A stretch of 64,000 bases of DNA, taken from Pavona decussata (taxonomy: Eukaryota). The stretch is taken from the NCBI GenBank assembly GCA_977016875.1, contig CDRNST010000056.1, forward strand, positions 6,262,001 to 6,326,000, read 5' to 3'. Every line of letters begins with the position of its first letter. Positions within the stretch are counted from its first letter, which is position 1. Under the pieces are notes generated by a model, which was not told where the DNA came from, did not search any database, and saw nothing but the letters and a program-made list of their open reading frames with translations. This document shows, in pieces, positions 9,631 to 21,244 of the stretch. Made by a program: the position numbers and the translations under genes.

Positions 9631-12600
9631 TATAGTCCAAATGAACATTGTAAATCATTGTATACACACGAGTGAACCACACGGACAACCAGTAACAGTT
9701 ACTGATAACCATGCTAAGATATTTTGCTAGGAAGGCTATGGTAAATTTCGACAAACCAGTAAACTCCTGTGGAAAGTGATTCTAATATGGGAAAGAAAGT
9801 TTATCTGATCCACTGTAATGTTTTGGCTACATTGTATCACTGCTATGAAGAGTGACAAGATATCAGACTATTAATATTTTTGATTAAACTGGTTGCCTGG
9901 CCAATGTTTGTCATATTTCTATCTTTAAACAATTCATAAAATATTTTCGTTTAAACATTGTCATTTTGGTAAAATTACTAAGGTTTCATTTATAACAATG
10001 TGATTTTTGTGTCAGCCTCGTTTTCATGCAAGCATGGTCACGTGATAACCCTTACCATATAAACATGTTTGGTTACACAGATGACATCCATCTGCCATAC
10101 TTTCTTCAATCTCTGTCTTTGTCAGGAGACGTAAAAGGGCTTTCCAGTGCAGCTTTTGCGTGAACCTCGTTTTCGTGCTAACTTGGTCACGTGACCCTAA
10201 TAACCTCTTAAAAGCGCGTTTTAGTATTTGAAACATTAATTTGCACAATTGTGGTGATTTTGGTTCAATTTTATGCAAATAATGGATACCTATAGATAAT
10301 TTTATGTTTGAGCCTCGTTTCCATGTTGGGAAATACATGTCACATTTTCGACCGCCCATAAAACCCGTCTGAGCAAGTTCCAAAGTTGCCACCAAAACTT
10401 TTCATGTAATTTAGGGTCCCCTTAACACATTCAGAATAGTGGCTTGCTTTCTTCACGAAATTCCCATGGCATCACACATGCTCCTGGACTAAATGCTGAA
10501 ATTTACTTTATTCAAGAAAATTATCTTCAAACCAGCTAATTGAAATCAAAATGCATCAGCACTGATTTACACAGCAATATAAATTATCGAGTCCACTTAC
10601 TGGCGTATGTTTCCATTGCAGCTTCCCCTCATTGCCAAGCCTTTAGACTTGTCCATTTCTTCCTTTTTTTCTGTTTTTCAGGCATGTCCTGGACGCAACT
10701 GGTTATGTCCTCCAATAATGATTTGAGTTGATCATCTTCTTCCTCAGTTCCAGATCTAGAATACACAAATACCAAAAGTAAATAAACTTGAGTTTACATT
10801 TATATAGTTAAGATTTACCAAGCTTTTTTTATGGTTTTACAGGGTATGGTTTTGAGAGATTTCTGTCTTAGACAGGGAATCAATTTCATCACATTGTCTA
10901 AAACAGGGTATCTTTTCTTGTCATAAACAGGGTCAGGATCCCCCCTCCAATACATGTAACCTTCCTGCCATTCACTAATCCAATGATGATGATGATAATA
11001 ATAATAATAATAATAATAATTTTTTTTTTTTTAAATTTAATAATGAGAACTCTTTATTGACATATTTCAAGCAAATTGCTATTCACAAGTTAGAAGTAGA
11101 AAAAAGAACTATTAAGTGGCACTTTCTGTAAGAACGGTCCACTGCGTTTCGGGTCAGAAAAAAGTTTGCCCTCAAACTTTGCCCAGTAAATCATCTTGGG
11201 TCGTACGCAAATGAAATGACTTTATTTTTTGGAAATACGTTAAAATAGATTTTTTACAGGTCTCAACAGTCAGAGCGGTCGAGGACCTAAATTTTGGGCG
11301 TGGCGAAAATAGAAAATTGCATAAAATTGATGAGCTCACTGCTCGAAAACCAGGAAACGCCACAAAAATTCATTGTAATTCCTAAGTAAAGTGGTCCTTC
11401 AAAGGTATGAAATGCATATTTATTTGGATTTGTTTTAATTTTTAAAGTCACAAAAATTAATATTAGTAACCCTCATTAAAACGCTTTCTGAAAACCGGTG
11501 AAAGTACCCTGTCTTTGCCGGCATTTATTTCACAAGTCCAGACCGAACCATTCTAAATTCCAACTGAACTTTGCTAAACAGATGTTAGAAAGTACAGAAA
11601 TGTAAAAATACCTTGCACTTTTTATCTTCCTTGATCACAGCGACTTCGCACTTTTGGCGCTTTTGCGAATATGAAATCCGCATTATGCAAATGAGGTTGT
11701 TGATCAAATTCAGATTGTTATAAATTAAAACATTCTTAATCGTTAACTTTCACCATTCTAAATTAACCACACCAAAAAACACACAAAATAAAACGCATAA
11801 ACGGTTTCAACCGTTTACAAATGCCTAAAATTGGTGAATAATTCTGTCCCGATTTTTGGATACTGTGTGGGGAATATTTATGCAAATTAGTCTGTCTGCT
11901 AAACAGTATTTAGGTAAGAAACTTATTTTCATTATTATTATTATTATCATTATTTTTATTATTATTATCATTATTATTTATTTTTTCATTTTTGCATGTC
12001 GCTGCTTTGTTGACGCCATTCAATTGGTATTCATTGCTTGAAGGTCCTTTAGGAAGTAAAATATTTCGCTGAGTTTGGCCTACTGCCATCTAAATTAATC
12101 ACAAATCACTGAAATTGACAAGCAGACTAGAAGGAGGATGCTGGCCTGTACATCCCTCCTCGTTAAGTGCCTTTCTCAATATATATAGGTAATATAAACT
12201 TCTGCACCACACCACGAAAAAAATCTCGATAGACTAGAAGTTGTTTGAGCCATTTGTCTTTTGAAGTGCAAGTTGTCATTTTATTACAGTTTGCAAAAAA
12301 CATTTCTTTAGTAAAACGTGATTTATTAATTTTCAAAAGCTGGGCATTATTAATATGTTGCTTAAAATGAATTGATAAGAACTTGTACATGAAAGCCGGA
12401 AAGAAAAACAAACTGCACAGAAAAAGAAAGATTTCATAGGAAGCAAGGGAAGGATAATCCGTCTATCCGTTCATCGCGATGTGTTCCGGTTGCAATCCCG
12501 GCGGACTGGTGTCTCGCTCTGAGAGTTTCACTCCAGGCCCTCCGCCGTAAATGCCAAAGCTTCTAACCTGTACTTCTTGGTGTAGTTAATATTTTTAATG

Positions 12601-13225
12601 TAATGTCTCATTGTTTCAGTGTAATTATTTTAAAGTCATTATTAACACGAGCTCTCCTCCTAGCAAAGATAATCAAATCCCACATTAAGGGACACCAGTA
12701 AAGTATATTGTTGCTGTGTTCTTTATGGTGTAAGTGTAATTTTAAAACTACTCCAAGCTAGTTGACAGGCAGTCCACTAAAATACCATAAATCCTCGAAA
12801 AAGTGCTACCTCTCGAATACGCGCCCCCAATGTGTCCTGGAAATGTTCGCTGTAATTCCATTCCATAACATTATATTTAGAGCACCCTCGGGATTCTGAA
12901 GGTGTCAGTTACCAGCTCAAAAACTACCACAGGGAAAATCTGAAATTTGAAATAAGTGCCGTGGACCCTCAACTGGCATGAGGTTAGAAGCCGTGGCTTA
13001 GAATTTGAACTTGACACTTATGAGAATCAATTACAGGTACTTTATTGCACATGTATTTCATTGAACATAAACAGCTCGTTTACGACTTACCCTCAAATTT
13101 GAATCCGCATTAAAGAGTTTTGTGGCCCAATCCACGTCCCGTATTCCTTATTCCCTTTATACAAATTCCTCGATCCTTGACGTCAAGACTTGGGTAATAA
13201 GGGAAATTGTGCATTCCGAAACAAG

Positions 13226-16200
13226 ATGTCGTGCTTTCTGTCACGTTCAGGGATTTGTAGTGATTCAAGAGGCATTTCAGGTTTCTTTAATTTGCTCCAT
13301 TGCACTGAATCAATAGAAAGCCACCTTGCGTCTGTCCATTTATCGCGAGAAACTATAACGGAGGGAGAGCTAATCCTGGCCAGGGCCGGCCTTTTTGATT
13401 TGGAACAGACCGTCGTGGAACAAATGTCGGTATGCGCCAAACATAGACACACCTTGGGGAAGTTCTGGCGCCCGAGAACAGCATGCCAGTATCCCGCTCA
13501 TCAGGGACGTCCTGGTAGGAGCCAGAAGGGGACAAAGAGCCGGTATTCTGTTAATCTTGAAACGTCTAAGGCTATTTATCAAATGTATGGTGTCCTTGTC
13601 CAAATCGGTTCAGGTGCGTACATAAGTTACTTCCTTGTGACCGTTCTCTTACATAAAATCAGTTATAGCAAACTGACTTTTATTTATGATGAAGAACTTC
13701 AAGTTGGTATTGAATTTTTCTAGGATAAAATTTTGCAACAAGTTTAGAGTGAAAATGTGGCGGGGAAGTGTGCCTAATTCGAGCTCCCTGTCTGAGATTT
13801 TTTCTCACGGCATTTGCGGGTGTTTTCGTTCAGTTTGTTGGCTTTTACAATTAGCGTCTAATTGAATTATCTACCTGTGTTGATAATTGAATGATCTTCG
13901 CTTTTCTCCCTGTCTTTATTTTTTTCTTTCGCACATGCGGTAAAGTTCCCAAAACAACGACCCTCGTTTAATACGTTTGGATGTAGCAGCCTTTCCTTTT
14001 TGCTCTTGCGGGTTGCACACTAATATTGCGACATAATTGGAAATGTAGAGGCATTCTTGACATCTCATTATGTATGAAATACCGGGTTCTTTGGTACACG
14101 GTACGTGATATGTTATTGGCCATCTCTTTTCTTTGCATATAATATTCTCCAAAAATGGGCCTAAAAAATCAGGGGGAAAGGAGTAAAGGAAGAGCAAAGA
14201 CAAAAACAAGGCGCGCTCGAGTTTATCCCCTTCCCCAGTCCCTCCTCGGTTTATTAACCTAAAGTAGCCCTTGCGGAGCAGAAAGATGCCGGTCGTGTTT
14301 TAGATAGTTCTTTACTTTAGGTCTCTGTGAATATAATGAAAATTGTCCAATTTTATCGCCTTCAGGGGGTTAAGGGCACCCTCACTCTCCCCCCCCCCCC
14401 CCCCCCCACATTGCGTATCAAAACGAAATTGTACTGAAACATCCCCCGATAAAAAATGTTCGTGTGGTATTTTCACATGCTTCTTAGACTGCGTAGCGCA
14501 GTAGCCCGAGCATGAGAAATAAGTCCGAAGTCAGTTGTAGAACCTTCCTTGAGTAATTTGACTTTCTTTTTGATCAAATAAGTTATTTGCATCAACTGCC
14601 GCAGCCAACACAATGCCTCTGTGAAAGAAATGCCTTGGATCTTCCGTGCAACTTCGGAAAAGGAATCTGTACAAATGTCCAATCCAGGCGCGAGGTGAGT
14701 TATTTTGTAAAATATCTGCCAACAAATGTAGGTATATAGAGAAAAATCAGACTATAACATCGTTTCTAACCTTTCGTAGAGAAAAAAACTCAGCGCGCGC
14801 ACCTATTAAAATCTCGATATTTATTAATGTAGCCTGGCTTATAATGAGTTTAATCTTATTTGATTAGTTTGAATCAATTTGTTACAGGAAGGCAATCTCC
14901 GCAATAAGATGAACATTGCCATATTTGGTGATATTCGTTATAAGATAAAGCACAATAACAACATGAGGGACGGCCCCGCCATTGTGTCAAGAATCTTTTA
15001 CTCCATAGTGAAGCCCCATTAACGCCGGTCTCTGTACAAATGGCTGTCGCGTTAAGAAAATGGCTATTGCATTAAATTGAGGGGCATTTTCAGTATCTGC
15101 TTTGGCGGGCGGGGGGAGTGGGGGGGGGGGGGGGTTGTTGCGCACGCGTTGGGAGCCTCAACAGACATATTAATAGCTACAATCTTGGACAATTGAAATA
15201 AAAAATTAAGACCAGCCCCCCTTTTTTTCAGTGATTGAAACATGGCGCGTTTTGCTTTACACGCAAATTCATACTGATTGATTTAGAATTTTTTTTCTTT
15301 TATTCTGTCCAAGATTGTAGGTCCTTGCATTTGCCAGGCCAAATATCAATTGGCTATCAATGCAACTGTGCATAGTAAAGCTTCCAAAGTGAAAGAGAAC
15401 AACTTCTTCATTAAAGAGGTTATTTGAGCCCGTAAATACTGGAAAAGCGATCTTCATAGGATGTCCATATCTCTTATTAAAGGGGGGAAGACATAACGTA
15501 AAATAAAGCACACAAAGAAGGTCGACCCCCTCCAAATTACACATTTTAAAGCGATTGAGTTTCGAGTTGGAGATGGCCAAGGTAGTAAAGTCCACATTTA
15601 AACTAATTCACTCCCTTTTGATGCACTAATGTTTTTTACAGCAAGCACATGCAACCGAAAAGGGACACGACCCGTCTATTTTTTGGACATAAGTACACTA
15701 AAAATGCCGTTGCTTGAACTTTGCTGGCTCTCAATTAAAATTAATTTTCATTTTAAGGCCTTGCAAAGAAGCAGCATCAGCTCAACTCCAGTCTTCAATG
15801 TACTCAACCATAACACCCTGTGTTTTGAGGCGGGGATGCAACCCTGATGAAACTTGGACGCCTTCAGCCTTGCTTGCATTTGACGACAGCATGGAAATGG
15901 AAGAATTTGGATTAACTGAAGAAAATACTGGAGGGCCAGTGCAAGTTTTCAATTCCTGCATTGACAGCCTTGCTGATGCTGCAAGAAAGCCTAAAATCGA
16001 TCCCCTGGAGTCACAAGTAGCTTGCTGGGAAAGTTGCCCCAAGGCTGAAAGATCAGCAGTTGTCCAGAAAACAGAGCAGGTGTGTCAGTTGTTGTGTGAT
16101 GTAATAGCGCCCAACGATGGAGAGCAATTGTTCCAGGCAGTAATAGATCAACACAACAATAAGACTGAAATTGGTGGTGTCGGCCTGAAAGCCCTCGTTG

Positions 16201-18773
16201 TTGCATATCAAAATGCCCCGTCCAGGTCTGTAAAAACACAAATACTGAGTATCTACGCCGATCGATTCACAAAAAAAGAGCTTAAAGAAATCCACAAGCC
16301 ATTTGAAGATCTCTCTGAAAGGCAAATAAAGAAGGCAAGAGCTCAAGCGAAGATTGAAGGACCCGGAATACCTGTTGAAAGATTACCGCGACACAGAATC
16401 CGTGTGGATCAGCGCCAACTAGACCATTTCTTGGAGTTTACCATGCGGCCATATTACTACCAAGATGTAGCTTACGGTACTCGCACCCTTAAACTTGAGA
16501 GTGGGGAAGAACTTGTTATGCCTAATGTCGTCCGCACAGTGGCCAGGTGCACCATCATTAACCAATACCTTGAACATTGCAAGGAAACTGGATTTCACCC
16601 GATCAGTAACTCCACCATGTGGAGAGTACTTGACGTCCAAGAAGCTTCACAGAGGAAATCATTGCGAGGTCTTGATAATACAGCAGCTGACGGTGCTGAT
16701 GGTTTTAAGGATTTGCTAACAATCGTAGACGAGCTAGAGCACGTTGGGGCAGCAAAGGACTGGTGTGAACAAGCAAGAAAGAAGCTTCGGGAAGGCAAGT
16801 TATATCTCAAGACTAAATACTGTGACCATTGCAGGGAGGATGGCAGCTCCTGCCCTGATCATTGTAGAGTCTTTGCTTTGAGCGATGCCAGTGACACTGA
16901 CTACCAGGACGCATGCAGCCACACCCATGACATGGCGTGCGCAGACTGCGAGAGCCTAAAAAGTGTCGTGGAAGAAGTAGAAGGTGCCATTCCTAAGTAC
17001 GAGGCACAGCTCGGAAAAGATCAAACAGACGACCTTCAGCATGATGCGAAGGGTGCCGCCTTTAAAATCTTCCAATGGAAAGCCCATATTTTACGAGCTC
17101 AGAATCAGGATCAAGCAAAGCAGCAAATTTTAAACTCCATACAAGAAGATGAAGTGGTCATAGTAGTTGATTGGGCTATGAAGTTTACAGTCATGAAGTT
17201 TCGAGAGAAGCAGGCAGAGTGGTTTGCCAAGAGGGGAATCAATTGGCATGTGAGTAGCGTCATAACGAGACGAGAGGAAAACCTTGAAGTAACCTGCTAC
17301 GTTCACCTTCTTGACAGTTGTCGACAGGACTGGTTTGCAGTGCTATCAATCCTGGAGAACCTTCTTTTTACCATTAAGCTGCGACACCCAGGAATAATTA
17401 AGGCCTACTTGAGATCAGATGAAGCAGGGTGTTACCACAATAGCAAGCTGGTTTCATCCTTCCGAGAGCTCGGACATCGCCAGGGGATTGAGATCGTCAG
17501 ATACGACCACTCCGAACCTCAATCGGGAAAGGACATGTGCGATAGAATCTTGTGTCCGATTAAGGCAGCTATTAGAAGGTACTGTAACGAAGGTCATGAT
17601 GTCGTATCTGCACAAGATATGCATACCGCTTTGAAAGAGAGGCCAGTTAAGGGGACGACAGCGACGGTCTGCACTGTCCAAGAGCAGTACACAACGCTAG
17701 AGATAAGGAAGATTCCGAACTACAGCAATCTACACAATTTCGAGTTTACTAAAGAAGGCCTACGTGTCTGGAGAGCGTTCAATGTCGGTCCTGGGAAGTT
17801 TATTCCATGGAATGACATTGTAATTTGTCCACAGAGAAAATCAGATCTCATGGAGAAGATCCCATTCTTCCTTACTACTGCTCGCCAGTTCACGTCAAAA
17901 GAGCAAAGCAGAGCCGATCTCAGTGAGAACAAGCTATATGAATGTCCCGAGCCAAGCTGCAATGAAGAGTTTCAAAGTCGGTCGGACCTAGACCTCCATA
18001 TGAATATGTTTGGTCATAATGCAATCCTGCGACAGCCTGGGAAGGAGTGTCTGTATGATAAGCTAAGAAGAGACTGGGTCAGCCACTTCCAGACGTTAAC
18101 AATACAAGGGGAAGGATTGACGGGAGCATCAGCAGCGGTGACAGAATCCCTTTCAAGTACCCCACAATTACAGAAGGGCTGGGCACTTCACAAAAAGTGC
18201 GGAGGGGCGAGGTTTCCTGAAAAGGTTCGGCGGTATCTGACGCATAAGTTTAATATTGGGCAAGGCACTGGCAGGAAAGAAGATCCAGCACAGGTTGCTA
18301 AGGATATGCGAACGGCTTCCACAATAGGCGGAGAGAGAATGTTCGATAGAACGGAGTGGCTCTCTAAGTGTCAGATTCAAGGTTTTTTCTCGAGGTTATC
18401 AGCAAGCATCAAGCAGGGGCACCAGATGGACATGGTGCTTACAGAAAGTGAAAAAGAGGATACCGACGCAGAAGAGCTGGACGATCTGGTAGAGGAGTAC
18501 GCTTGCGACATAGATGAGGAACGCCTAAGAGATACAACAGAGGTAGTCCTGGGGAAAATAGGCCTGACCCACCCAATCCTGTACGATATTTATGATTTGT
18601 GCACCTTGTCAAGAGATGGGAAGCTACCAAGTTTCAAGGTTCCGATGCTTAGAGAGATGTGCAAACATTTTGATCTTTCAGTCCGATCCAAAGATACCAA
18701 GGCAGTCCTTCTTTCAAAAATGAAGGAAATGATCTCGGAGTGTAGTTGCAATGCAATGCCGAATAAGCAGTGA
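13226..18773 (+). CDS. Sola3-like DDD transposase, 3 exons (13226-13613, 14583-14694, 15758-18773), 1171 aa, apparently intact
   Basis: Splice phases 1 and 2 match, total 3516 nt; motifs VVDWAMKF..REKQAEWFAKRGINWH, LRSDEAGCYH, SEPQSGKDMCDR; C2H2 finger CPEPSC..H..H; HTH-like and SAP-like C-terminal segments. Confidence 0.85.
15177..15320. mobile_element. 144-bp MITE in intron 2 of the Sola3-like gene
   Basis: Perfect 15-bp TIR CTACAATCTTGGACA / TGTCCAAGATTGTAG; TSD not evident. Confidence 0.65.
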
Positions 18774-18873
18774 TAGTAATAACTGTGAAAGACGGGGACG
18801 AGATTAGGAAGCAACGGTCTCTGTAAACGTTTAAATTAACTAGCGCCGTATTTCTCAAGTAAAATTATGCGTT

Positions 18874-19052
18874 AGATGCAATATATCAAACACGAGAAGG
18901 TGTGTTTCATCAGACATCCAAACACTGAGAAGTAGGTTGAAAAAACGAGGCACGGATGAGTTTTTTTAAACAACTTCAAATGATCAATAATTCAAGGCTA
19001 AAGTTAGCAAAATTTTATGGTAATTAGGAAATCATATCCAAACCACGGTCAC
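18874..19052 (+). repeat. Internally deleted copy of the palindromic interspersed repeat at 43046-43338
   Basis: Shared TCAAACAC..GTGTTTCATCAGA..CAAACACTGAGAAGTAGGTTGAAAAAACGAGGCAC and CATATCCAAACCACGGTCAC. Confidence 0.85.
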
Positions 19053-20834
19053 ACTAGTGATGTAAATGAGTTCCTATGGGAACTTTCCTTGAGGTAACGT
19101 AACATCTTTTGGTGTTTTGTGTGGGACTTTTCCGCGCGGATTGCAACAAATTCCCGCCATTTTGAAACCGGGTCGTTTCTATGAGAAAAATTGGGCGCTC
19201 CAGCGCGCGCGCAAATGGTGCGCGGTCATTTTTTTTTTCGGGTATTTGTCGGACTTCGCAGATAAAACACGTTATATGTAAAGCATATAGCAATACTATC
19301 TGTTCATATTAAAAGTTAACAGTCATTTTGAAGTAAGCTTAGAAAGATTTTAAGGAAGGATTTTGTCTTCAGTTTCATTTGTTAACCACGTTTTACAGTT
19401 TCAAAGCGCGGTGCATGCAAAGGTCATTGTTTATATAAGGAAATTGTCAATATAACTGCCCCTGAAAGAGATTCACCTTAAGACATTGATGTCAACTGAG
19501 GCCATTCCCGCTCAGATTCCAAAAGTTAGTAGTTATACGCCAGTAAGCTTTAATTGTACGGTGTTGGATATTGCTTATCACGTATGAGAATAAAGAATAA
19601 TAATGTATTCAAAGCAGTGGTGAATGGAATCAATTTGGAGAAAATTAGGAACTTTATAACTGAGGAGTTTATAGGACCTTGACCTATAAACTTCTCCAGT
19701 GCAGGAGTGATGTCGTTAAAATGCCGTATCCGGCAAAAGAAAACTTTCTTCATCAAATTGTTCTGTACGTTGGTCGTAGATCGGGGAAAAATAAGATGGT
19801 CTTGTTAGCATTGTCCTTTTAGTAGTCATTTACCAAATAAAAAGGCAATCAAGTGTTGTCGATTTCAATGCATATCGCAGCATCCATTTAAAGCTGAATT
19901 GATCTTCAAGTTTTTGATACCAAAAACGTGTACAAATTTTCAATAGCACTTTTCAAAAAATAAAAATCGACAGTAGAAAACAGCGAGATGAAAGATTTGT
20001 TTACATAGGACTAAGTTTCGCAGACAGCGCATTTAGCATATTAAATGTTTACATTTTTTTACATAGCATTCAGAGGTCTGGACTGAATAATTCATCAGTT
20101 TAAAAGCATTTTTAAACGGTTAAACCCGTTTATGCGTTTTAGTTTTGTGTGCTTTTCGGTGTAGTTAATTTAGAATGGTAAACTTTAGCGATTAAGAATG
20201 TCTTGTTTTATAACAATCTGAATTTGATCAACAAGCTCATTTGCATAATGTGGGTGTCATATTCGAAAAAGCACCAAAAGTGCGAAGCCACTGTGATCAA
20301 GGAAGATAAAAAGTGCAAGGTATTTTTACATTTCTGTGCTTTCTAACATCTGTTTGGCAAAGTTCAGTTGGAATTTAGAATGGTTCGGTCTGGACTTGTG
20401 AAATAAATGCCGGCAAAGACAGGGTACTTTCACCGGTTTTCAGAAAGCGTTTTAATGAGGGTTACTAATATTAATTTTTGTGACCCTAAAAATTAAAAAA
20501 AATGAAAATGAATATGCATTTCATACCTTTGAAGGACCACTTTACTTAGGAATTATAATGAATTTTTGTGGCGTTTCCTGGTTTTCAAGCAGCGAGCTCA
20601 TCAATTTTATGCAATTTTCTATTTTCGCCACACTCAAATTTAGGTCCTCGACCGCTCTGACTGTTGTGGCCTGTAAAAAATCTATTTTAACGTATTTCCA
20701 AAAACTAAATTCATTTCATTTGCATACGACCCAAGATGATTTACTGGGCAAAGTTTGACGGCAAACTTTTTTTCGACCCGAACCGCAGTGGACTGTTCTT
20801 AGAGAAAGTGCCACTTAAAAACTATTTACAATTT

Positions 20835-21244
20835 GAGAATGATGATTATTCTAGAAAGTGACCCAGGCATACTCGGAAAAAAGAAATCTGAGTGCTCCTA
20901 TCAGGAGTCGAACCTAAGACCTTCCGATTACTAGTTCGGATGCTCTACCACTGAGCTACAGGAGACTTGTGGGAGCTAAGGCCATTAAACTAGGTTCATG
21001 GGAGGAACATCCTGCATACTGCTAGGATTTGAATGTCGAACGTGTGGTATATGAAAGAAATGTGATGGTAAATTTCCAGCCTGGTGAATGAATGAGAATG
21101 ATGATTATTCTAGAAAGTGACGCAGGCATACTCGGAAAAAAGAAATCCGAGTGCTCCTATCAGGAGTAGAACCTAAGACCTTCCGATTACTAGTTCGGAT
21201 GCTCTACCACTGAGATACAGGAGACTCGTGCGAGCTAAGGCCAT
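20835..21244 (-). mobile_element. tRNA-derived SINE-like repeat, about 1.6 tandem copies of a 259-bp unit
   Basis: 259-bp periodicity; flanked by direct repeat TATTTACAATTT (20823-20834, 21245-21256). Confidence 0.75.
20893..20966 (-). pseudogene. tRNA-Thr(AGT)-like sequence, copy 1 (copy 2 about 21152-21225)
   Basis: Minus strand GTAGCTCAGTGGTAGAGC (A box), TCCGA-ACTAGTAA-TCGGA anticodon arm with 8-nt loop, GGTTCGACTCC (B box), followed by T-run; copy 2 has mutated boxes. Confidence 0.7.

Follow-up and report, generated by a model that had tools for sequence, protein, structure and literature searches.

A probable full-length, autonomous-type Sola3 DNA transposon with an intact coding frame in the genome of Pavona decussata

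We analyzed a 64-kb stretch of the anthozoan Pavona decussata genome, referred to here as the window, and identified at positions 11116-20814 what is in all likelihood (probability about 0.8) a Sola3-group DNA transposon of the autonomous, cut-and-paste type, present at full length and inserted within an older short repeat. The copy is complete, young and coding-intact, and it represents a new family of a known but sparsely studied group, not a new kind of element. The interval contains no ambiguous bases (N). The features of the element are listed in Table 1.

Table 1. Positions, within the 64-kb window, of the element and its component features.
Feature	Position	Strand	Remarks
Sola3-group element (probable)	11116-20814		9,699 bp; Pavona decussata contig CDRNST010000056.1
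TTAA target-site duplication, left copy	11112-11115	.	single TTAA at paralogous empty sites
Left TIR	11116-11824	+	709 bp; terminus 5'-GTGGCACTTTCT
5' non-coding internal region	11825-13225	+	largely kept in deletion derivatives; one X1 contig reaches upstream of 13100
Exon 1	13226-13613	+	ATG start, then GT donor; 388 nt; 129 codons; ends ...IGS
N-terminal Cys/His domain (C26, C70, H73, C87)	exon 1, 13226-13613	+	conserved
Intron 1 (predicted)	13614-14582	+	GT..AG; 19-nt poly-C tract at 14389; removal not seen in contigs
Exon 2	14583-14694	+	112-nt phase-restoring micro-exon, ICINCR...; AG acceptor, GT donor; donor joined to exon 3 in contigs
Intron 2	14695-15757	+	GT..AG; contains 177-bp segment 15311-15487 missing from subfamily B
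Exon 3	15758-18773	+	main transposase exon; AG acceptor; 3016 nt; 1004 in-frame codons from 15759; TGA 18771-18773
Cys/His-rich stretch	16821-16949	+	exon 3 residues 355-397, including CPDHCR; upstream of catalytic core; from translation
RNase H-like catalytic core	17145-17588	+	candidate DDD triad D471, D554, D592
Core aspartates	D471 17169-17171; D554 17418-17420; D592 17532-17534; D595 17541-17543	+	
C2H2-like zinc finger	17937-18017	+	exon 3 residues 727-753, after core; weak Pfam zf-C2H2 match, E 0.64
3' non-coding internal region	18774-20105	+	19511-20105 kept in deletion derivatives
Right TIR	20106-20814	-	709 bp
TTAA target-site duplication, right copy	20815-20818	.	

The first-pass annotation had proposed terminal inverted repeats (TIRs) of ~710 bp at both ends and a TTAA duplication, and both were found. 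The TIRs measured 709 bp each and were 93.4% identical to one another over 710 alignment columns, two of which were gap columns, and an alignment of the two arms indicated that their similarity ceases inside the TIRs. Relative to the left TIR of this element, the left arms of other copies were 95-98% identical while their right arms were 93-94% identical, indicating that the arms were already different before the family amplified. A scan of the TIRs for subterminal repeats yielded short two-copy matches only, which are probably due to chance. TTAA was present at both flanks of the element, and three uninterrupted paralogs of the interrupted ~130-bp host repeat had one TTAA across the insertion point (...GAACTATTAAAAACTATTTACAA...). 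These empty-site paralogs indicate that the TTAA flanks are a true target-site duplication (TSD) and that the insertion consists of the element plus one TTAA. The assembly yielded no allelic empty site, all matches to the flanks being paralogous copies of the repeat. Other parts of the window contained fragments of BEL/Pao and Gypsy retroelements, in agreement with the earlier description of the setting as a transposable-element graveyard.

A census of the family identified ~10 transposase-bearing copies that are 93-98% alike. Two of these are fully open, namely the present element and C186 (G000:C186:333196-342733), in which the three exons are open and the ATG and splice sites are intact. 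The present element is therefore not the sole intact copy in the genome. The family also includes 4-5 kb deletion derivatives, which keep the termini, lack the transposase exons and retain 11116-12921 and 19511-20105. Three full-length copies (C186 and two C46 copies) and three short derivatives (C338, C144 and C71) were flanked by TTAA on either side, and TTAA was also present at the one end examined of four more full-length copies and at one end of C9. The flanking DNA was different at every checked copy. The element is thus one of a multi-copy family whose other members are likewise flanked by TTAA, and not a lone copy without relatives, the situation that the earlier annotation had taken to point to domestication or a dead relic. 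Many further Sola3-like families were found in the Pavona decussata genome.

A three-exon gene encoding 1171 amino acids had been proposed for the element. The open frame was upheld, since the exons add up to 388+112+3016 = 3516 nt, equal to 1171 codons plus the stop, with neither a stop nor a frameshift in the three in-frame pieces. The two splice junctions fared differently. The 14694|15758 junction (a 1063-nt skip, GT..AG) was present in contigs of the sequencing runs X1 (182 nt on the shorter side) and X8 (30 nt), the kinds of these runs being guesses ('RNA?' and '?'), and intron 2 was almost uncovered in X1. The same junction was not found in the deep DNA run X9, which did show a 177-nt skip; gaps in the blast alignments agree with the absence of segment 15311-15487 from subfamily B. 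The spliced form of the 13613/14583 junction was not seen in the run contigs, leaving this junction with comparative backing. Contigs X1 13507-14381 and X8 13199-14029 read straight through the exon 1 donor, and the contigs from which intron 2 had been removed began 72-173 nt ahead of the acceptor of exon 2. Since an in-frame TAA is located at 14579-14581, just before exon 2, retention of intron 1 would sever exon 1 from the transposase. With only 97.5% similarity to the present copy, the long spliced X1 contig must come from another family member, while the X8 contigs were 99.4-99.8% alike, yet had the ancestral letters at the private sites 13561, 13563 and 14604. The contigs therefore show transcripts of the family and not transcription of this copy itself. 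Protein P0001 (97% identical) was considered as the product of a spliced transcript and was rejected, because its 3,714-nt contig proved to be unspliced genomic DNA from a metagenome.

Comparative evidence supports the predicted junction between exons 1 and 2. In L056, a related element of another genome that is ~75% identical, the ATG, donors, acceptors and phases were all kept while the introns were unalignable. Its exon 1 is 74% identical with the ATG context and the donor unchanged, and its exon 2 is 118 nt long with the acceptor at the equivalent place; the 6-nt difference is frame-preserving, and identity over the first 27 residues is 70%. Exon 2 was found solely in this Sola3 family and its close kin. 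The contigs that are continuous across 13613, and the sequence upstream of 14583 that persists in contigs lacking intron 2, could also be read to mean that exon 1 is a separate small Cys/His ORF1 (stop at 13721-13723), that the transposase is translated from an internal ATG in exon 2 or 3, and that intron 1 is no intron. We consider this unlikely, because exon 1 homologues lie upstream of transposase ORFs in ~10 diverged families and their homology stops at residue 129, the position of the donor, with ...(I/V)GS followed by GT, whereas the tail of the ORF past the donor differs in length among copies (open frames of 150-180 aa). The conservation of donor, exon 2 acceptor and phases in L056 next to an unalignable intron 1 also argues against two proteins, as do annotated Oculina proteins in which the exon 1 domain is fused to the transposase.

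The Cys/His motifs that had been proposed for exons 1 and 2 were present as described. Searches and structural models handled the exon products one by one. Oculina protein P0005 has an N-terminus that shares 48% identity with the exon 1 product (E 4e-40). A model of its domain (pLDDT 78.7) had no Foldseek match at E <= 0.001 and no VIA-align match at Z >= 2, and an Atlas feature search with the domain gave no usable match. For exon 3, the Atlas search returned cnidarian clusters only, named 'C2H2-type domain-containing protein'. A Pfam scan of the three exon products gave two sub-threshold chance matches, both in exon 3, and nothing else; the closest proteins lack both a functional name and a Pfam model. 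The CPDHCR motif was also present in the homologues P0005, P0065 and P0057. Aspartates D471, D554, D592 and D595 (exon 3 numbering; 167 is added for the full-length protein) were invariant in 101 homologues, and the zinc-finger residues C305 and C310 of alignment A1 were invariant in that alignment. In a confident, RNase H-like AlphaFold model of the core (pLDDT 85.8), the three residues of the candidate triad lie on beta1, past beta4 and where the helix that follows beta5 begins. Foldseek matched this model to enzymes of the RNase H superfamily, namely retroviral integrase cores, herpesvirus terminase nucleases and Argonaute PIWI domains, while a PDB sequence search with the core profile returned no match.

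We then considered whether the copy bears signs of selection. The dN/dS values relative to subfamily B were 0.14 for exon 1 and 0.25 for exon 3, while the exon 2 value of ~0.8-1 was based on 4-5 changes and was uninformative. Purifying selection on exons 1 and 3 was thus seen between subfamilies and not on the present copy itself. The copy has ~0.3-0.4% private change, with 10 coding and 9 intronic private changes. Seven of the coding changes are nonsynonymous and three are synonymous, a neutral split that does not indicate selection on this copy. An open frame is to be expected by chance in a young copy; as a rough estimate, if ~1 in 20 random substitutions creates a stop, ~0.6 of the copies that have taken on 10 coding changes would stay open. 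The odds are close to even that this young copy is already dead or silenced and no longer moves, possibly because a private substitution disabled it, the host silences it or intron 1 is removed poorly. Such a fate would fit the 7:3 split, which is expected without selection, as well as the retention of intron 1 in the contigs and the condition of the nearest copy, C66, a broken one that starts with ACG and carries a stop as well as large indels. However, the five private amino-acid changes in exon 3 are all at variable columns and alter no conserved residue. The catalytic aspartates are all preserved, as are the ATG, the splice sites, the TSD and the two TIRs. Family transcripts from which intron 2 has been removed also argue against a dead or silenced copy.

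A long intact frame amid decayed transposable elements, together with purifying selection on exons 1 and 3, could also be expected of an immobile host gene domesticated from a Sola3 transposase. We regard domestication as extremely improbable, since the ~10 paralogous copies are at separate loci and each checked copy has TIRs and TTAA flanks, the termini are common to the deletion derivatives, the selection was between subfamilies, and the insertion interrupts a repeat.

If the locus is a cut-and-paste Sola3 transposon, as we favor, the transposase would bind the long TIRs, probably via the exon 1 Cys/His domain and the zinc-finger-like motifs, and the candidate DDD site D471/D554/D592 would cut both element ends. 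Reinsertion would take place at TTAA, and the deletion derivatives may be mobilized in trans by the transposase. The copy is presumably intact because it is young, and its mobility may or may not persist. It is possible, though rather doubtful, that the family is still mobile and that this copy or C186 encodes a working TTAA-specific transposase, with the exon 1 domain as a putative new TIR-binding module. The domain would be a new type of module because nothing in the PDB matches it structurally.

We know of no Sola-superfamily transposase with demonstrated transposition or a solved structure. The literature that we found mentioning Sola counted or classified the elements only. The locus described here is a good candidate for a first test of Sola activity, as its ends are defined exactly, its TTAA duplication is proven, its cDNA model has comparative support and its candidate catalytic aspartates are named. 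The natural deletion derivatives are possible transposase substrates, and C186 provides a second intact copy for comparison. An active element would allow two questions to be addressed, namely whether excision of Sola3 from TTAA is seamless, like that of piggyBac, and what the unmatched N-terminal domain binds. Were the family mobile and its transposase working, this would, to our knowledge, be the first Sola element that could be put through a transposition assay, and it might serve as a piggyBac-independent tool for targeting TTAA. For genome biology the result is an ordinary one: Sola-3 is already known from corals, being routinely annotated in coral genomes including Acropora (PMC12314368), and the same genome has further Sola3-like families.

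The Sola3 identity put forward in the first-pass annotation was supported by a comparison of the cores. The core matched, block by block in an unscored alignment made by eye, the published Sola3 (E.13) cores of Sola3-1_HM and C. remanei CRE_08425, whose rows are in the supplement of Majorek et al. 2014 (PMC3985635). By eye, the blocks KFRE.Q.E.F, G...HV, QD...L.ILE.LL, LRSD.AGCYH and SEPQ.GKD were common to Sola3-1_HM and/or CRE_08425. In the same by-eye comparison, YLRSDEAGCYHNSKL in the present element corresponded to HLRSDNAGCYHSTKL in CRE_08425, KFREKQAEWF to KFREGQKEYF in Sola3-1_HM, and RYDHSEPQSGKD to RYDYNEPCRGKD in a Sola3 E.13 row, and the core blocks were not shared by the Sola1 and Sola2 rows of that supplement (PMC3985635). 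Pfam is without any Sola model (PMC5751038). Taken together, the block matches support assignment of the transposase core to the Sola3 group of the Sola superfamily. A 4-bp TSD was reportedly used by Bao et al. in 2009 to define Sola.

The element resembles reference Sola3 in its core (by eye), the DDD triad on an RNase H-like fold (in the model), the 4-bp TSD, the TIRs, which are common to autonomous and non-autonomous copies, and the cnidarian host, Sola3-1_HM being from Hydra. It differs in being a new family with 709-bp TIRs, three exons including a family-specific micro-exon, and in having an N-terminal Cys/His domain without a PDB match, which reference Sola3 elements may or may not share. 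With piggyBac it shares the TTAA TSD, the DDD triad, the RNase H-like fold and, presumably, cut-and-paste transposition. Membership of piggyBac was rejected because the three exon products had no Pfam match to DDE_Tnp_1_7 (PF13843). In addition, the TIRs are far longer here, the termini are GTGGCAC and not the CCC...GGG of piggyBac, and the 50 Foldseek PDB matches listed included integrases, terminases and Argonautes and no piggyBac transposase. The claim that the element is unrelated to piggyBac thus stands at the superfamily level but not at the level of the fold, since both are RNase H-fold DDD enzymes. Kolobok elements, which occur in cnidarians and have a TTAA TSD (PMC9587614), resemble the present element in these two respects. 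Kolobok membership is considered unlikely, as Pfam, which has no Kolobok core model, found no THAP domain and the core motifs match the Sola3 blocks (by eye).

The first-pass annotation had described a Sola3-like transposon with long terminal inverted repeats (TIRs) and a TTAA duplication, and both features were borne out. A repeat search of the window recovered the inverted arms (see table), and reading the termini base by base placed TTAA followed by GTGGCACTTTCT at both ends; the matching bases beyond TTAA (11103-11111 and 20819-20827) are A-rich host-repeat sequence and lie outside the element. On global alignment the 709-bp TIR arms were 93.4% identical with 2 gap columns, and the likeness ceased just inside them. 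Because TTAA is palindromic, its presence on both sides is not in itself proof of a duplication. We joined in silico the left flank, part of a ~130-bp dispersed repeat, and the right flank, from ~20834 an abundant 259-bp tandem repeat, and compared the joint with uninterrupted copies of the host repeat. Three such copies (L021-L023) aligned over 13-16 bp across the joined flanks and read ...GAACTATTAAAAACTATTTACAA... with one TTAA, indicating that the insertion consists of the element plus one TTAA. TTAA was also found at both ends of three full-length copies (one on contig C186, two on C46) and three short derivatives (C338, C144 and C71), and at one fetched end of four more full-length copies (C66, C52, C21 and C330) and one end of C9. 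The DNA neighbouring these TTAA-flanked copies always differed.

The TE-rich setting described earlier was confirmed by ORF fragments of BEL/Pao and Gypsy-type retroelements in the window. The host repeat is dispersed, ~130-150 bp long with 86-91% copies on many contigs, often adjoins an ATT/AAT microsatellite, and may represent a MITE or a terminal part of a larger TE. The tandem repeat gave 2,825 first-look candidates genome-wide, with copies 95-98% alike and arrays on many contigs.

Features of the element, its surroundings and related loci (window coordinates unless a contig of the assembly G000 is named)
Feature	Position	Details
Element	11116-20814	9,699 bp; 0 N; G+C 40.8%
Outer inverted arms	11103-11294/20636-20827	
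Inner inverted arms	11290-11793/20138-20641	short extension to 11824/20106
Exon 1	13226-13613	ATG start; donor cag/gtgcgt
Exon 2	14583-14694	acceptor aaataag/; donor gag/gtgagt
Exon 3	15758-18773	acceptor ttttaag/; stop TGA, then TAG and TAA
Host repeat	10982-11115 and 20815-20833	
Tandem repeat	20834-21214 and beyond	period ~259 bp; adjoins element on right
BEL/Pao and Gypsy-type ORF fragments	140-1129, 26288-27289, 33465-34436, 35979-38395, 39612-40379	DUF5641, Peptidase_A17, aspartyl protease, RVT_1/RT_RNaseH, zf-RVT
Two C46 copies	C46:1830439-1839957, 2133586-2143104	opposite orientation
Further Sola3-like loci	C91:3821654-3826211, C78:2491746-2496347, C45:803233-808036, C43:2012895-2017696, C26:2528736-2536731	

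The three exons (388, 112 and 3,016 nt) were open and joined in matching phase into 1171 codons, as first read; they were searched and folded separately as 13226-13612, 14585-14692 and 15759-18770. We compared 5,801 bases of the element with contigs of sequencing runs whose kinds are guesses, among them X1, which behaves like RNA since intron 2 is almost uncovered in it, X8, and X9, a deep DNA-like run. Removal of intron 2 (a 1,063-nt skip with GT..AG ends, equivalent to 14694/15758) was seen in an X1 contig of 3,318 nt (shorter side 182 nt) and an X8 contig of 364 nt (shorter side 30 nt), and was absent from X9, in which introns were covered. Of the two junctions predicted at the outset, that of intron 2 was thus recovered, while 13613/14583 of intron 1 was not seen spliced in the X1 and X8 contigs, which show presence and not absence. 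Contigs of X1 (13507-14381) and X8 (13199-14029) ran continuously through the intron 1 donor, the two intron-2-spliced contigs extended 72 and 173 nt beyond the exon 2 acceptor into intron 1, which also contains, at 14389, a 19-nt poly-C tract that breaks assemblies. The long X1 contig was only 97.5% like this copy and hence derives from another subfamily; X8 contigs were 99.4-99.8% like it, but at 13561, 13563 and 14604, where this copy has private letters, they showed the ancestral ones. These contigs thus indicate expression of the family and not of this copy. X8, whose near-identical contigs include the spliced form, is filed under another organism label (organism B); the explanation could be a closely related species, mislabelling or sampling of a holobiont.

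A direct join of exon 1 to exon 3 breaks the frame, and an in-frame TAA at 14579-14581 leaves no possible acceptor further upstream for the verified exon 2 donor. An annotated Oculina patagonica protein of 1131 residues matched exon 1 over its residues 5-131 (48% identity, E 4e-40) and is homologous to exon 3 over the remainder, and a second Oculina protein is arranged alike. Many families of the same genome that are 35-47% identical to the element (on C98, C34, C91, C78, C77, C45, C43, C26 and others) carry exon 1-like ORFs 1.3-5 kb upstream of exon 3-like ORFs on the same strand. Nearly all members of a 23-sequence exon 1 alignment ended at ...(I/V)GS, exactly the proposed donor, and the ORF tail past it ranged from 150 to 180 aa among copies. 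A related element in GCA_044670265.1 (L056; ~75% DNA and 73% protein identity) was alike in DNA solely over 13219-13667, 14581-14665 and 15731-18748, that is, the exons with a few adjoining bases. It shared the ATG context, the exon 1 donor, an AG acceptor at the equal base before TTATTTG.ATCAACTGCCGC, and the acceptor ttttaag/GCCTTGCAAAGAAGC; its exon 2 was 118 nt against 112 nt, with phase kept. Relative to subfamily B (defined below), dN/dS was 0.14 for exon 1 and 0.25 for exon 3, showing selection between lineages, with too few changes in exon 2 to judge. We consider the three-exon product likely, with a probability of about 80%.

The element belongs to a multi-copy family and is not a single copy without relatives. 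A left TIR search gave 169 first-look candidates, with paired arms 9.5-11.4 kb apart (94-98% identity) or 4-5 kb apart (~91%), and exon 3 identified ~10 loci that were 86-100% identical. In the 4-5 kb elements, 11116-12921, part of 14253-15470 and 19511-20814 are retained and exons 1 and 3 are missing; most of their termini read TTAA/GTGGCAC, and they are classic non-autonomous derivatives. All three exons were open in this copy and in C186, where ATG and splice sites were intact. C52 had two stops in exon 3 and the C46 copies one each, C66 had an ACG start, one stop and large indels, and C21, C76, C330 and C459 had frameshifts, stops or truncation. This copy and C66 form subfamily A (terminus GTGGCAC), probably with C76 as well (97-98% protein identity), and the other five fetched copies form subfamily B (GTGACAC). 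Across copies, left arms resembled one another more than they resembled right arms, so the 6.6% arm divergence characterises the family and does not serve as a clock. When changes were polarised with subfamily B as the outgroup, 10 coding changes, 7 of them nonsynonymous, and 9 changes in 2,032 intron bases were private to this copy (~0.3-0.4%); C66 had ~4 times as many. The five private amino-acid changes of this copy in exon 3 (S508N, Y573H, R803Q, M828T and D857G) fell at variable columns. As far as its sequence tells, this copy is young and undamaged, and an open frame would be expected from its youth alone.

Several observations concern other copies and relatives. The two C46 copies, with identical statistics against the element, share a stop aligned to window 18234 and differ in their flanks, so a defective copy has seemingly moved or been duplicated. 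A 177-bp segment of intron 2 (15311-15487), beside G-rich low-complexity sequence (15-nt G tract at 15120), was present in this copy, C66 and X8 contigs and missing from subfamily B copies, X9 and L030. The latter, a 3.7-kb ENA metagenome scaffold (SAMN08969888), matched exon 3 and a portion of intron 2 at 97% identity; P0001, the protein it encodes and a member of a metagenome protein set, is an animal transposon sequence. Genome-wide, exon 3 gave 880 and exon 1 668 first-look candidates, and several of the many further Sola3-like families had an open exon 3-like frame with an exon 1-like ORF upstream.

A Pfam search of the exon products gave nothing significant, and a PDB sequence search with the core profile gave no match. 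Word search found >260 protein relatives; the organism-named ones were mainly anthozoan (Oculina, Actinostola), none with a functional name, and the Atlas clusters of relatives were cnidarian. The proposed Sola3 homology was supported when we compared the core, by eye and without an alignment score, with the group E.13 RNase H-like cores printed for Sola3-1_HM and C. remanei CRE_08425 (Majorek et al. 2014, PMC3985635). The element matched CRE_08425 in the beta1 block (VDWAMK against MDWSQK), the third block (RGINWHV against SGISVHV), alpha1 (QDWFAVLSILENLL against QDAITVLLILEHLL) and beta4 (YLRSDEAGCYHNSKL against HLRSDNAGCYHSTKL), and Sola3-1_HM in the second (KFREKQAEWF against KFREGQKEYF) and last blocks (RYDHSEPQSGKD against RYDYNEPCRGKD); by eye, the Sola1 and Sola2 rows of the supplement were without these blocks. 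D471, D554, D592 and D595 (counted within exon 3; +167 gives the full-length position) were invariant in 101 homologues. The AlphaFold model of exon 3 residues 425-745 (pLDDT 85.8, pTM 0.81) had the RNase H order beta1-beta2-beta3-alpha1-beta4-alpha2-beta5-alpha3, with the conserved triad of D residues at the canonical places. The 50 Foldseek matches listed included retroviral integrase cores, herpesvirus terminase nucleases and Argonaute PIWI domains (probability 0.9-1.0) and no piggyBac transposase. The exon 1 domain (pLDDT 78.7; conserved C26, C70, H73 and C87) had no match in a structure search of its model, and it may bind zinc and DNA.

We propose that the transposase would recognise the TIRs through its Cys/His modules, that its DDD site would cut both ends and integrate at TTAA with a 4-bp staggered cut, and that the 4-5 kb derivatives would depend on transposase supplied in trans. 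We know of no activity assay or structure for the Sola superfamily, and the practical worth of this locus is a cleanly delimited, intact candidate from it. Sola-3 has been noted in Acropora corals by RepeatMasker class (PMC12314368) and was listed among the transposon superfamilies with the highest expression in Pristionchus (PMC9297572). Pfam showed no THAP domain, which Kolobok has, and no Pfam match links the element to piggyBac, which sets it apart from that group. By its core blocks, compared by eye with those of Sola3-1_HM and CRE_08425, the element belongs to the known Sola3 group, in which it forms a new family.
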